A stretch of DNA of 64,000 nt from sequence record LR756504.1. One strand, given 5' to 3'. Numbering within the stretch: position 1 is the first letter of the stretch; each line of letters starts with the position of its first letter. The translations under genes were made by a program, and so were the position numbers. The notes beneath the pieces are model-generated. The model saw only the letters and a program-made list of their open reading frames with translations. It was not told the DNA's origin and ran no database searches. Of the stretch, positions 26,785 to 31,079 are shown piece after piece.

Positions 26785-28002
26785 ATGAAAAATGATATGA
26801 ATCAAATTGTAGTTGTAAAGCGAAACGGTAAAAAAGAGTCAGTTAAGCTTGAAAAAATTCTACACAGAATTGACAAAGAAAGTTATGGATTGAATTCTCA
26901 ATGGATTCAACCAATGGAAATAGCAAAAAAAGTAATAGCGGGTATTTATAGTGGTGTAACTACTAAAGAACTAGATAAATTGAGCATCGAGACTGCTGCA
27001 TCATTAACAACTAAACACCCAGATTATTCTACACTTGCTGCAAGATTAGCAATCACAACTTTACACAAGGACACTAAAAGATATTTTTCTGAATGTGTAG
27101 AAGACTTATATAATTTTATTAATAAGGAAACTAATAGACATGCGCCTTTAGTAAGTGAAGAATTTTATAATATCGTTAAAGAAAATGCTGACGAATTAGA
27201 TTCTGCTATTGTTGCGTCTCGCGATTTCATGTTTGATTATTTCGGATACAAAACATTAGAAAAATCATACTTATTAAAAATTGATGATGCTGTAGCAGAA
27301 AGACCTCAATATTTATTTATGAGAACGGCATTAGGTATTCACGGTAGAGATATTGAATCTGTATTAAAAACTTATGATTTGATTTCACAGGGGTATTTTA
27401 CGCATGCTACACCAACATTATTTAATGCTGGTACAACAAGACCCCAACTTTCGAGTTGTTTTCTTTTAAAATTACATTCTGATTCAATTGAAGGAATTTT
27501 TGAAACAATTAAAGATACTGCATTAATTTCCAAAAATGCTGGTGGTATAGGCATTGCCATCTCAAATGTTAGAGCGGCTGGTTCTTATATCACTGGTACT
27601 AACGGACGCTCTAACGGATTAATACCATTCTTGAAAATATTTGACTCATGTGCTAGGGCGGTTGATCAGTGTTTTTTAGAAGGTACTAAAATTGTAACTA
27701 ATAAAGGTTTAGTAGAAATTAACAATCTTAAAGAAGGTGATTTAGTTCTTACATCCGATGGGAAATTTAATCCAGTTGAAACTAAATTGTCATTTACAAA
27801 AGAAACAGCTAGGATAGTTAAAATTAAAACTGCTAAAGGTGAACAAGAAGTAACTGAAGAGCATAATATATTAGTTATCCAAAATATAGAAAAAGATTTA
27901 GATAAAGAAACAATTAAAAAAAGAATATTAACTGGACTTTATCCAATAGAATGGAAGAAAGCAAAAGATTTAGTTATAACAGATAGAATATTAAAATATT
28001 AA
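26785..28002 (+). CDS. nrdA: RNR class Ia alpha subunit, N-terminal fragment fused to N-half of a split intein
   Basis: ATP-cone (VVKRNG), ERPQY, THATPTLFNAG, LSSCFLL, AGGIG, ...AVDQ then intein block A CFLEGT. Confidence 0.93.
   Translation: MKNDMNQIVVVKRNGKKESVKLEKILHRIDKESYGLNSQWIQPMEIAKKVIAGIYSGVTTKELDKLSIETAASLTTKHPDYSTLAARLAITTLHKDTKRYFSECVEDLYNFINKETNRHAPLVSEEFYNIVKENADELDSAIVASRDFMFDYFGYKTLEKSYLLKIDDAVAERPQYLFMRTALGIHGRDIESVLKTYDLISQGYFTHATPTLFNAGTTRPQLSSCFLLKLHSDSIEGIFETIKDTALISKNAGGIGIAISNVRAAGSYITGTNGRSNGLIPFLKIFDSCARAVDQCFLEGTKIVTNKGLVEINNLKEGDLVLTSDGKFNPVETKLSFTKETARIVKIKTAKGEQEVTEEHNILVIQNIEKDLDKETIKKRILTGLYPIEWKKAKDLVITDRILKY
27670..27999 (+). mobile_element. Split intein, N-half (110 aa)
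   Basis: Starts CFLEGTKIVT; block B VTEEHNIL; ends at stop 28000-28002. Confidence 0.88.
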
Positions 28003-28067
28003 AATTTATTTTTAATATTTAAAGTAATTAGTCCATAAGGATTAATTAAAAATTATTGAAATTAAAT

Positions 28068-28979
28068 ATGTCAAAAATAATCACAACAGAAGATTTTATA
28101 TTAAATGCTAAACAAAAACATAACGATATTTACGACTATTCTTTAGTAGTTTATAAAAATGCTAAAGAAAAAATAAAAATTATATGTAAAATACATAATG
28201 AAATATTTACACAAACACCAAATTCACATCTACGTGGAAGTGGATGTCACTTATGTGGAAGAAAAAAAGTAGAGGATTCTATGCGATTATCAAATGAAAT
28301 ATTTATAGAAAAAGCTATATTAATACACGGATTAAAATATAACTATGACGAAATAAATTATATTGATTATTATACTAAGATTAAAATAAAATGTTCTTTA
28401 CATGGTGAATTTTTTCAACAACCTAGGAAACATTTATATGGTAATGGTTGTAAAAAATGTTGTGGTTTAATAAATAATTTTATAGATTTATGTAAAGAAA
28501 AATTTTCAGAATATAACTTTGATTATACAATTACTAAATATGAAGGTATGCGAAATAAAATCAAAGTAAATTGTTTAAAACATGGAATATTCGAAAAAAC
28601 GGCATCCAAATTCTACCACAGTAATCAAATATGTCCGAAGTGTGTCAATAGAACAATATCAAAATCTGAACATGATTGGTTAGATGATTTAAAAATACCA
28701 CAAATAAATAGAAATTATTATTTATTAATAGGTGATAAAACATATTGTTTAGATGGTATTGATTTAAAAAATAAAATTATATACGAATTTAATGGTGACT
28801 TTTTTCATGGTAATCCATCAAAATATAAAAATGATGATATAAACCCATTACTTAAAGAAACATTTGGTGAATTATATAAAAAAACTTTAGAAAAAGAAAA
28901 ATATATTTTGGAAAACAGCGATTTTAAAGTGGTATCTATATGGGAGAGTGAATATTTAAAAAGTAAAAATAAAAAATAG
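28068..28979 (+). mobile_element. Free-standing Vsr-like/PD-(D/E)xK homing endonuclease between the intein halves
   Basis: Three YDYS..Y...KIKIxCxxHG-type Zn repeats, LDGIDLKNKIIYEFNGDFFHG, VSIWESE; ATG at 28068 (track starts at TTG 28056). Confidence 0.85.
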
Positions 28980-28987
28980 AAATAAAT

Positions 28988-29182
28988 ATGAGTAAAGAAC
29001 AAATTGAAAGTGGAATGGAGTATATAGAATCTCCAGAAGAATTAAATTTAAATTTTGATTTAATTGATTTTGAGGAAATAGAAAGTGTTTCTATTGAAGA
29101 AGTTGAAAATGTAAAAGTATATGATTTAGAAATAAAAAATAATCATACGTATCAAGTTGATGGGCTAGGATTAGTTCATAAC
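28988..29182 (+). mobile_element. Split intein, C-half (65 aa)
   Basis: Own ATG; block F VYDLEIKNNHTY, block G LVHN; followed by GGG. Confidence 0.88.
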
Positions 29183-31079
29183 GGTGGTGGTAAACTGTAA
29201 TTGCTTCCACATAAAAAAATTCTGTGAACTGCTGGAAAATCCTTTAAGTTTCTAATACTACAAAGTAATCTGTGAAGATAAACTTGAATGTTTAAAAAAT
29301 TAGAAAATTGGACAATCAGCATCCAAGCTTCTTAGAAATAAGAAGAAGGTTCAACGACTACTAAAAGTAATCTAAGTTTTAAATAATATGATGAAATTGG
29401 CACGAGTGCAGAACAGTCTAAAAAACTGAAGATATAGTCTGAACTTATAAGAAATTATAAGAAATTAGGATAAAGAACCTAATGATAACAAACTGAAAAG
29501 AAAAGGTAGTTTTGCTGTATATTTAGAACCTTGGCACGGTGACATCATGGATTTTCTCGATTTAAAGAAAAACCATGGTAAAGAAGAAATGCGAGCAAGA
29601 GATTTATTTTATGCTATATGGATGTGTGATCTTTTTTTACAAAGAGTGGAAAAAGATTTAGATTGGTCATTAATGTGTCCTAATCAATCACCAGGTTTGG
29701 ATGATGTATACGCTGAAGAATTTGTTAAATTGTATGAACAATATGAAGCTGATGGTAAATTTTTGAGAAAAGTTAAAGCCAGAGATGTTTGGCACAAGAT
29801 ACTTGAAGCGCAAATGGAAACTGGTACACCATATATTTTATATAAAGATTCGTGTAATGCTAAATCAAATCAAAAAAATGCTGGAATTTTGAAGACATCA
29901 AATCTTTGTGCTGAAATATTAGAAGTAGTATCTGGTGAAGAAGACATAGATCCAGAAACTGGTGTGGCTGGACAAACTGCTGTTTGTAATTTAGCATCTA
30001 TTTGTTTGCCAAAATTTGTAAAAGGTAAAAAGAATTTCAAATTTGATTTCGAAAAATTACATGATGTAGCTTACCAAGCTATTGTAAATTTGAATAAAGT
30101 AATTGATGTTAATTATTACCCAACAGAGAGAGCGAAAAGATCAAATACTAAAATGAGACCTGTTGGTCTCGGCACACAGGGTATGGCGGATGTTTTTTTC
30201 TTAATGAATTTAGAATTTACATCACCAGAATCTAAAAAATTAAATATAGAAATATACGAAACAATATATCACGCAGCATTACAAGCCTCTTGTGATATAG
30301 CTAAAAAAGAAGGTACATACACAATGTTTGAAGGTTCACCAGCTTCTAAAGGTATATTACAATTTGATATGTGGAATGTTGTACCATCAAACAGATATAA
30401 TTGGTATGAATTGAAAGAAGAAATTAAAAAATATGGTTTGAGAAACTCATTAACCACATGTAGTATGCCTACGGCATCAACGGCATCAATTTTCGGAAAC
30501 GAAGCTTCACAAGAAGTTCAAAGTAGCAATATGTATACACGTAAAGTTCTTTCAGGCGAATTCATTATAGTAAATAAACATTTAGTTAAAAAATTGTGCG
30601 AATTGAATTTATGGTCTGATGAAATGAGACAACAAATTATTGTTAATAATGGATCTATTCAAAACATTACTTCAATACCTAAAGAAATTAGAGATATTTA
30701 CAAAACTGTTTGGGAAACTTCTCAAAAAGATGTCATAGATATGTATGCTAATCGAGGCTCTTTTATCGATCAAACACAATCTATGAATATATTTATGGCT
30801 AATCCTAATTATGCCAAATTAACATCAATGCATTTCTATGGATGGGGTGGTGGAGTAACAAAAAGTTCACTGGATGAAAAATACGGAGCAACACCAGAAA
30901 AAGCATTAAAAACTGGTATTTACTATTTAAGAAGTCAGGCTGCTGCTGATGCAATCAAATTTACAATAGATCCCAATATGGTTAAAAGTGTAAAGGTTGA
31001 TGGGAAAGAATATGATGCGAATGAACAAATGAGTTGTTCAATTGATAATCCTGATGATTGCATTGCATGCGGCTCGTAA
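28988..31079 (+). CDS. nrdA: IntC + RNR alpha C-terminal fragment (exons 28988-29191 and 29496-31079)
   Basis: [46 protein letters not shown], YYLRS, C-terminal CSIDNPDDCIACGS. Confidence 0.93.
29192..29495 (+). ncRNA. Group I intron (304 nt, no ORF) in nrdA C-terminal gene
   Basis: P GAACTGCTGGAAA (29226), Q AATCAGCA (29314), R GTTCAACGACTA (29349), S AAGATATAGTC (29429); P1 exon GUGGUGGU pairs with GCUUCCAC ending in U-G; terminal G; removal restores [19 protein letters not shown] in frame. Confidence 0.93.

Follow-up and report, generated by a model that had tools for sequence, protein, structure and literature searches.

A phage class Ia nrdA gene interrupted by a split intein facing glycine, a homing-type nuclease gene and a group I intron

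Previous studies have described several systems in which a ribonucleotide reductase (RNR) gene is divided or interrupted by mobile elements. In the fractured genes of Dassa et al. 2009 (PMC2677866; NrdA-1 to NrdA-7), phage-type nrdA is present as two same-strand open reading frames (ORFs) with intein halves, a free-standing nuclease gene lies between these halves, and a hairpin is located in the nuclease leader. In phage Aeh1 (nrdA-a/mobE/nrdA-b), a free-standing homing nuclease gene divides a class Ia nrdA, whose two polypeptide products together restore function (Friedrich 2007; Crona 2011, PMC3045599). RNA and protein splicing are combined in one RNR large-subunit gene in nrdE of Bacillus phage SPbeta (cited in PMC3653736). 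Here, we describe positions 26785-31079 of a 64,000-nucleotide (nt) stretch of DNA (the window) from LR756504.1, the unannotated 636-kb genome of an uncultured phage, where they correspond to record positions 436845-441139. One class Ia nrdA in this region is interrupted three times, by a split intein, a nuclease gene and a group I intron. The split HINT/intein element is inserted between Q and G of VDQGGGKR, and the first C-extein residue following its terminal His-Asn (position +1) is glycine, the first residue of the native GGG. The DQGGxKR segment holding this break is what we take to be specificity loop 2 of class Ia RNR.

The window shares with the fractured genes each of the features listed above. 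However, their NrdA split inteins lie just before the thiyl-radical Cys, whereas that of the window lies at VDQ/GGG (the slash marks the junction), and the window adds a group I intron 9 nt downstream as well as Gly at +1. The link to published fractured genes drawn in the initial annotation therefore holds for the layout but not for the insertion site (PMC2677866). The window nuclease is only a candidate member of the Vsr-like I-Bth0305I-type family of Dassa et al. Aeh1 has neither intein nor intron, uses short tails as interaction domains and is split between the equivalents of Cys-439 and Cys-462, not in the VDQGGG loop. The intein of SPbeta nrdE is reportedly contiguous and canonical, with intron and intein at separate sites; in the window, three codons lie between intein and intron, and the intein is split around the nuclease gene.

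Two further comparisons concern the individual elements. Type A bacterial intein-like (BIL) domains, such as that of Clostridium thermocellum (2LWY), share with the window element a HINT domain with Cys1 and His-Asn in which no Cys, Ser or Thr follows at +1 (PMC4031507, citing Dassa 2004 and Aranko 2013). However, BIL domains reportedly occur in non-conserved bacterial regions and without homing nucleases (in part after PMC2814812), whereas the window element occupies a conserved site of an essential enzyme, within an invariant RNR motif; its split relatives flank nuclease genes, its longer contiguous relatives may contain nuclease domains, and it behaves as an intein at the DNA level. The locus also resembles a collaborative homing pair, since its intron lacks an ORF and adjoins the same conserved target (within 9 bp) as a free-standing nuclease gene, and since the elements were gained or lost together in two related contigs (L006 and L129, below). 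In contrast to such a pair, the window has its nuclease gene between the halves of a split intein, and the insertion of that intein, 9 bp from the intron site, by itself interrupts the target. Each component is thus of a known kind, while the composite and the family-wide Gly+1 are undescribed as far as could be found: literature searches with poor coverage of subscription journals gave no report of inteins with Gly+1, nor of a split intein with an intron next to it.

The pieces of the host gene account for a complete NrdA. NrdA-N runs unbroken into the N-terminal intein half (IntN) in the first ORF (26785-28002), for which Pfam reported ATP-cone, Ribonuc_red_lgN, positions 1-72 of the RNR barrel profile and Hint_2; nrdA part 1 thus comprises the ATP-cone, the all-alpha domain and the first barrel strands. 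The last piece, nrdA part 2, covers positions 75-517 of the same barrel profile, and as positions 1-72 and 75-517 are found in separate pieces, these abut just as in an uninterrupted NrdA. A related huge phage (LR756502.1) encodes such an uninterrupted NrdA of 850 aa, with VDQGGGKRK free of any insert. Because this protein is unbroken across the same stretch, the window pieces represent one complete gene with nothing missing. All elements were found where the initial annotation had placed them in the ORF list and sequence, and the pieces are collinear with the LR756502.1 protein. The locus was the sole match to the C-terminal half of NrdA in the 636-kb record (tblastn, E <= 1e-20), and the window nrdA is the only class I alpha gene found there. 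The N-extein had dN/dS values of 0.016-0.14.

IntN starts with CFLEGT, holds T-E-E-H, ends in ILKY and matched Hint_2 with 35.4 bits (cut-off 28.4). The C-terminal half (IntC) ends in VYDLEIKNNHTYQVDGLGLVHN and has the motifs VYDLEI..H.Y...GLVHN, in which the penultimate His and terminal Asn are invariant in our intein alignment (A4). Cys1, TxxH, block F and His-Asn are kept in split and contiguous relatives at about 70 loci. Relatives of IntN at 50% identity have the same length of 109-110 aa, and IntN and IntC together approximate the size of contiguous mini-inteins (168-173 aa) at the identical site in other viruses. Judged by eye, the split point coincides with the position of large central inserts in longer contiguous relatives; those of 267-509 aa have large inserts at the position where a homing-endonuclease domain would be expected. 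The net charge of IntC is -14 in the window and -10 to -14 across lineages, while that of IntN is -1 to +4; opposite-charge halves are the electrostatic pattern of natural split inteins (PMC2677866). In every pair compared, dN/dS was below 1 for IntN (0.14-0.60) and IntC (0.05-0.56), and in the least saturated pair it was 0.15 for IntN, 0.055 for IntC and 0.016 for the N-extein. These ratios indicate that purifying selection acts on both intein halves.

The best PDB sequence matches of IntN were the type A BIL domain 2LWY (E 6e-5) and the gp41-1 intein. Sequence does not place the intein among BIL domains, as the family profile does not separate these from canonical inteins: it matched PI-PkoII (1.3e-8), 2LWY (1.9e-8) and a TFIIB intein (5e-8) alike. 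Shifted intein boundaries were rejected, since intein-free alleles have the motif at the same length. Between two related loci, L002 and L061, IntN was more diverged (dS 0.75, dN 0.11) than the N-extein (dS 0.18) or IntC (dS 0.12), which suggests that the IntN segment was exchanged by recombination.

Glycine at +1 is not peculiar to the window. A degenerate DNA pattern, HN-x-GG-KRKG, that allowed any residue at +1 recovered 39 loci from IMG/VR, all with Gly at this position (39/39); they include contiguous inteins of 168-509 aa from giant-virus bins and from viral genomes of 1.8-2.5 Mb. Applied to one bacterial genome per species, the same pattern gave Gly in 28/28 RNR loci, mostly of Bacteroidota, and 33 other matches that were out-of-context chance matches. 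The Bacteroidota elements are chromosomal contiguous inteins of about 357 aa (ARYVDQ/CFHPDT...) in otherwise intact RNR frames. Altogether, 67 of 67 pattern-found RNR inteins at the VDQ/GGG site, from phages, giant viruses and bacteria, face Gly. In addition, an IntC profile was searched against 1.84 billion representatives, and 80 matches were tabulated. Among the matches listed, 22 of the 24 RNR-site clusters read HN/GG and two read HN/SG, while more distant canonical inteins in other proteins mostly had HN followed by S, T or C. On these counts, the intein allele at VDQ/GGG has been successful and has been transferred widely, with Gly next to it in nearly all cases. The two Ser+1 clusters, P0199 and P0217, read HN/SGKRNG and HN/SGRRKG, with CNQ/CFVPNT at the N-terminal junction; a canonical Ser+1 variant of the allele hence exists beside the Gly+1 majority.

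The 304-nt group I intron proposed in the initial annotation was confirmed by covariance-model search. When the region was scanned alone (501 nt), RF00028 matched 29182-29461 with 60.4 bits (gathering score 50; E 6e-15), and the match spans the entire model (positions 1-253). Whole-window Rfam scans in gathering and E-value modes missed the intron, which was hidden by speed filters; these filters could likewise hide further introns elsewhere in the A+T-rich 64,000-nt window. In P1, the last 8 nt of the 9-nt micro-exon, GUGGUGGU (29184-29191), pair with GCUUCCAC (29203-29210), with a U.G pair at the 5' splice site (U29191 with G29203). G29495, the terminal G of the intron, is the sole G that restores the frame. 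The predicted spliced junction is GGUGGUGGU/AAAAGAAAAGG, with the micro-exon joined as GGTGGTGGT/AAAAGAAAAGGTAG. Excision places IntC-GGG in frame with the catalytic half, in agreement with the earlier claim that RNA splicing is needed. The micro-exon is followed by AAA CTG TAA, so that an in-frame TAA stands two codons past the 5' splice site, and all lineages have an in-frame stop 1-2 codons inside the intron. Such early stops are the usual device by which phage introns keep ribosomes off the intron core (PMC3984707).

Comparison of the intron between lineages, which share 70-87% identity, argues for a maintained fold. In an alignment of eight sequences, RNAalifold recovered P1, P3, P4-P6, P8, P9 and P9.1, and compensatory changes were found in 37 of 79 pairs. 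With P7 included as a pseudoknot, 98.3% of cells were paired, compared with 84.4% after shuffling and 35-40% with slid partners. The covariation score was 0.455, against 0.159 for shuffled alignments (attained in 0/500 shuffles) and 0.05-0.10 for slid ones. The P7 pseudoknot itself (GACUA/UAGUC) is invariant across the eight sequences and hence uninformative on covariation, and single-sequence folding of the region was also uninformative (z -1.2). GGT GGT GGT is unchanged in 8/8 aligned sequences and in the empty allele of LR756502.1. We conclude from these comparisons that the intron is a ribozyme under selection for its fold, and its predicted self-splicing from the nrdA RNA is well supported by structure and covariation. 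Introns with a similar conserved core, some without an ORF and others with a nuclease, interrupt structural genes of Staphylococcus, Listeria and Lactococcus phages, which makes the intron of the window a member of a widespread phage intron family at a new site.

Table 1. Features of the interrupted nrdA locus (positions in the window)
Feature	Position	Strand	Evidence
nrdA part 1 (N-extein, 295 aa)	26785..27669	+	ORF; Pfam PF03477, PF00317, PF02867 positions 1-72; ends ARAVDQ
IntN (110 aa, Cys1, T-E-E-H) and TAA stop (28000-28002)	27670..28002	+	Pfam Hint_2
10-bp hairpin, nuclease-gene leader	28025..28048	+	Folding z vs shuffles
Free-standing homing-type endonuclease gene, 303 aa, TAG stop	28068..28979	+	PHROG 681/559, weak Pfam
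IntC (65 aa), blocks F and G, ATG at 28988	28988..29182	+	ORF; weak Pfam Intein_splicing; alignment
Micro-exon, 9 nt, GGTGGTGGT = GGT GGT GGT, C-extein +1 to +3 (Gly-Gly-Gly)	29183..29191	+	Invariant in 8 aligned sequences
ORF-less group I intron, 304 nt	29192..29495	+	RF00028 60.4 bits; covariation
nrdA part 2, 527 aa and stop (31077-31079): catalytic barrel, C-terminal CxxC tail	29496..31079	+	PF02867 positions 75-517, E 8e-164
Intrinsic-terminator-like hairpin closing the unit	31083..31125	+	19-bp stem then T-run

The elements follow each other closely (Table 1): 65 nt separate the IntN stop from the nuclease ORF, and 8 nt separate the latter from the ATG of IntC. No terminator-like site was found between the pieces of the nrdA unit, in which the only internal site, a weaker one, is located at 27211-27225 within nrdA part 1. 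The whole unit is probably transcribed as one RNA. Genome-wide recoding of TGA or TAG was rejected as an explanation of the stops, as TGA, TAG and TAA each end long ORFs and a TAA follows two codons after the TAG of the nuclease ORF.

The nuclease ORF matched the phage endonuclease families PHROG 681 (E 1e-35) and PHROG 559 (E 4e-32). Its N-terminal part has three treble-clef zinc-finger repeats (DUF723/DUF4379; weak Pfam matches), while its C-terminal domain matched no Pfam family, and neither single-sequence nor profile searches gave a PDB sequence match. A few of its 1245 homologues carry PF04480 or are named very-short-patch-repair endonuclease. An AF2 model of the protein (pLDDT 89.8) gave only E. 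coli Vsr (1vsr, 1cw0) and arenavirus cap-snatching nucleases as Foldseek matches of at least 0.5 probability; the full model matched 1vsr (probability 0.75, TM 0.38) and 1cw0 (probability 0.54) weakly, all with E > 0.05. The C-terminal domain is probably a Vsr-like PD-(D/E)xK domain, an assignment that is plausible but not proven. Of the earlier label of a Vsr-like endonuclease, the homing-type nuclease is thus upheld, and the Vsr-like fold is probable only. The stretch 27990-28080, which includes the leader stem, folds at z = -4.6 relative to shuffles, and similar hairpins occur upstream of the nucleases in fractured genes (PMC2677866). A free-standing relative of 486 aa with six zinc-finger repeats is encoded on a 302-kb viral contig (L012:4800-6260). 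Its gene has an FtsK-like ATPase gene on one side and a primase-like ORF on the other, and a nuclease/ATPase pair (SbcCD-like by eye) comes after the latter.

The stacking of elements at one site had been regarded as exceptional in the initial annotation. Instead, the composite of split intein and intron recurs in at least seven diverged phage lineages and defines a phage clade, and such recurrence indicates that the arrangement did not arise by chance. Contigs of these lineages came from IMG/VR and JGI metagenomes, searched for the exact pattern GGTGGTGGTAAA...GAAGATATAGTCTGAAC, and from retrieval via the N-terminal protein. In a tree of intein ends, seven intron-bearing split inteins formed one clade (support 0.97), whose sister is a clade of intron-less split inteins at the same site. 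Of the intron-bearing clade, the window, L002/L061 and L060 have the zinc-finger nuclease, whereas L013/L063, L015 and L064 lack it and have spacers of 12-142 nt, a distribution consistent with a single loss. Members of the intron-less clade have DUF7487/TnsA-like ORFs between the intein halves (L032, L043, L048) or nothing (L023), and L045, which lies outside the tree, has a small HNH nuclease at this place. The fractured layout of the window is shared with L002-L009, L060 and L061. Among the nearest NrdA-N-sized proteins in a collection of 5.8 billion proteins, 106 of 120 were fused to an IntN of 109-110 aa, and nine representative clusters contained short IntC ORFs that, like that of the window, stop 1-11 codons past GGG. 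To judge from these collections, fracture at VDQ/GGG is common in uncultured phages.

Additional interruptions were observed in the nrdA C-terminal parts of some of these relatives. L013:1870-4017 (- strand) carries an extra contiguous mini-intein with canonical junctions (IMPTAS/CQVSS...VSHN/TASILGNEAS); at the corresponding site, the window reads MPTASTASIFGNEAS and is uninterrupted. The C-terminal part was apparently fractured again in L062:541-2718, L064:1618-2299 and L015:5333-7555 (- strand). The second split intein of L062 (...VHN/CAEIVE) apparently occupies the site of Dassa et al. just before the thiyl-radical Cys, and the ORF between the halves of the second fracture is weakly GIY-YIG-like in L062 and belongs to DUF7487 in L015.

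Two contigs of one study provide a record of joint mobility. L129 (ENA ERZ18668759 scaffold_708) has the same gene order as L006, and over +-1.5 kb the two share about 99-100% identity, with 60-nt windows ranging from 95 to 100% and most of them at 100%. However, the L129 nrdA reads VDQGGGKRK unbroken and contains no intein, nuclease gene or intron, whereas L006 carries the whole composite (about 1.8 kb). With the L006 flanks joined, the alleles match perfectly over 70 nt or more on each flank of a divergent tract of about 55 nt, which starts 10 nt before the intein site, ends 46 nt past it and covers the intein and intron sites. Within this tract, about 20 mostly synonymous substitutions reduce the identity to 75%. 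Homing, or its reversal by gene conversion, would be expected to leave such a pattern, which shows that the intein and intron insertions were exchanged together. The exact-pattern scans of viral and metagenome sequences, which diverged introns would escape, gave no allele that carried only the intron; hitch-hiking therefore fits better than competition between independent elements. Of the competition or collaborative homing suggested earlier, joint travel is borne out by the block gained or lost between L006 and L129, whereas competition is not. The suggestion that the ORF-less intron is mobilised by the adjoining nuclease gains indirect support from the presence or absence of intein, nuclease and intron as one block. 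L129 also has an in-frame TGA at the conserved Gly of KRK-G-S (L129:4840-4990), inside the divergent, more G+C-rich 55-nt tract. Other long ORFs in the same contigs end in TGA, which argues against genome-wide recoding; the codon may have arisen by nonsense mutation or assembly error, or may belong to a tract from a donor reading TGA as Gly.

From these features, a two-step route to an intact NrdA can be proposed. The ribozyme would excise the intron, with the GGU GGU GGU micro-exon as P1 substrate, and fuse IntC-GGG in frame to KRKG. Two polypeptides would be made, NrdA(1-295)-IntN and IntC-NrdA(296-end), and the acidic IntC and slightly basic IntN may associate into one HINT domain. With Gly at +1, the canonical transesterification step is impossible. 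Cys1 and TxxH could still form the N-terminal thioester and His-Asn could cleave the C-terminal junction by Asn cyclisation, whereupon the freed alpha-amine of Gly-Gly-Gly would most likely attack the thioester and join VDQ to GGG, as proposed for type A BIL domains. At the DNA level, the nuclease would cut intein-less, intron-less nrdA alleles, and repair would copy the entire cassette with the intron.

Ligation of the NrdA halves is unproven, and we give an even chance to its proceeding by N-S acyl shift, Asn cyclisation and aminolysis. The conserved Cys1, TxxH and His-Asn are precisely the residues that the aminolysis route requires, and a flexible, unhindered GGG N terminus is chemically the best possible amine. 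A precedent for joining without a +1 nucleophile is provided by type A BIL domains, for which the sequence of thioester formation, Asn cyclisation and aminolysis has been proposed (PMC4031507). As a broader and more tentative proposal, held at somewhat below even confidence, the VDQ/GGG HINT elements may form a natural, widespread class of inteins that ligate without a +1 nucleophilic side chain, contiguous in Bacteroidota and giant viruses and split in phages. In the present phage clade, ligation would then occur in trans and only after the ribozyme has joined the GGG codons to the rest of the gene, and the 9-nt micro-exon would serve both in the ribozyme substrate helix and as ligation nucleophile. 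Several points weigh against ligation. Canonical inteins with a non-nucleophilic +1 mutation are known only to cleave, so that efficient ligation here would need an adaptation, and none was identified in the intein sequences. The family profile is equally near to PI-PkoII, TFIIB inteins and the BIL domain and does not place the family among BIL domains, and Ser+1 in P0199 and P0217 implies that the lineage is canonical by descent. Moreover, cleavage products predominate in type A BIL domains according to a review (PMC4031507). This last point also favours the alternative that no ligation takes place. The split HINT domain would then only hold the two NrdA pieces together, whether or not it also excises itself, and the alpha subunit would function as two chains without a covalent link, on the model of Aeh1. 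Gly+1 removes the nucleophile for the branched intermediate (PMC4031507), and a nuclease insertion into nrdA is known to leave two polypeptides that form a fully active RNR (PMC3045599). However, docking alone would not need Cys1, TxxH and His-Asn, which are nevertheless kept across about 70 loci, and the contiguous inteins of Bacteroidota and giant viruses would also leave a nicked enzyme. The break falls, moreover, in what is presumably specificity loop 2, where new charged termini should be harmful. On balance, we consider an unligated NrdA rather unlikely.

The remaining explanations are far less probable than either ligation by aminolysis or an unligated enzyme. Canonical class 1 protein trans-splicing, as assumed in the initial annotation, agrees with the other class 1 hallmarks, which are all present (Cys1, TxxH, block F, His-Asn), and with the known occurrence in nrdA of split inteins flanking nuclease genes (PMC2677866). 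However, inteins of classes 1, 2 and 3 all pass through a branched intermediate on the side chain of the +1 nucleophile, and elements lacking this residue are unable to form it (PMC4031507). As Gly has no nucleophilic side chain, its presence in the window and at the 67/67 pattern-found loci rules out trans-splicing in the canonical sense. Nor is the sequence rescued by RNA processing: no alternative intron splice sites in the window give an in-frame Cys, Ser or Thr after His-Asn, and intron-less relatives encode HN/GGG directly. Slightly more credible, though still highly improbable, is independent translation of the C-terminal half from the end of the intron, which would make splicing and the intein halves dispensable passengers. 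The last three intron bases (29493-29495) are always an NTG in frame with KRKG, namely, CTG in the window and, at the corresponding positions of the relatives (L002, L013, L015, L060, L062, L064), ATG in five lineages and TTG in two; gene callers begin the C-terminal gene of relatives at this codon, and its A-rich leader resembles genuine starts of the LR756504.1 genome. It is a more realistic start than the ATG at 29547 named in the initial annotation, which would drop conserved residues. However, translation starts poorly at CTG, the conserved GGG would be missing from the product, and the N-terminal half would be left with an unpaired IntN. The conservation of micro-exon, reading frame and ribozyme structure, the latter with covariation, and the purifying selection on both intein halves likewise argue against an independent start. 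Least credible of all is a decaying nrdA inactivated by accumulated selfish elements, despite the example of Campylobacter phages, in which inteins and inserted ORFs have degraded nrdA (PMC3653736): all reading frames are intact, the low dN/dS of the N-extein (0.016-0.14) and the values below 1 for the intein halves point to selection, the arrangement is retained in at least seven lineages, and the 636-kb record yielded no other class I alpha gene.

Elsewhere in the window, Rfam reported two tRNA-like genes (51031-51104 and 51176-51250) within 51028-51250 on the - strand, while ARAGORN called only one tRNA in this region, whose anticodon loop is irregular and to which no amino acid was assigned.

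Overall, the locus would represent a natural case in which an essential enzyme depends on two successive self-catalysed repairs, one of RNA and then one of protein. Its elements behave as one mobile cassette, which bears on collaborative homing and on the origin of split inteins. The presence of Gly+1 in every pattern-found RNR intein at this site is contrary to textbooks, in which protein splicing requires a Cys, Ser or Thr at +1, and nucleophile-independent protein splicing in an essential protein thereby becomes a directly testable question. If ligation occurs, these elements would be naturally split, scar-free ligation domains that are independent of Cys, Ser or Thr and need only a junction Gly, as sought in protein engineering. 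If it does not, they would represent a second and far more widespread way, of the Aeh1 type, of running a nicked RNR.

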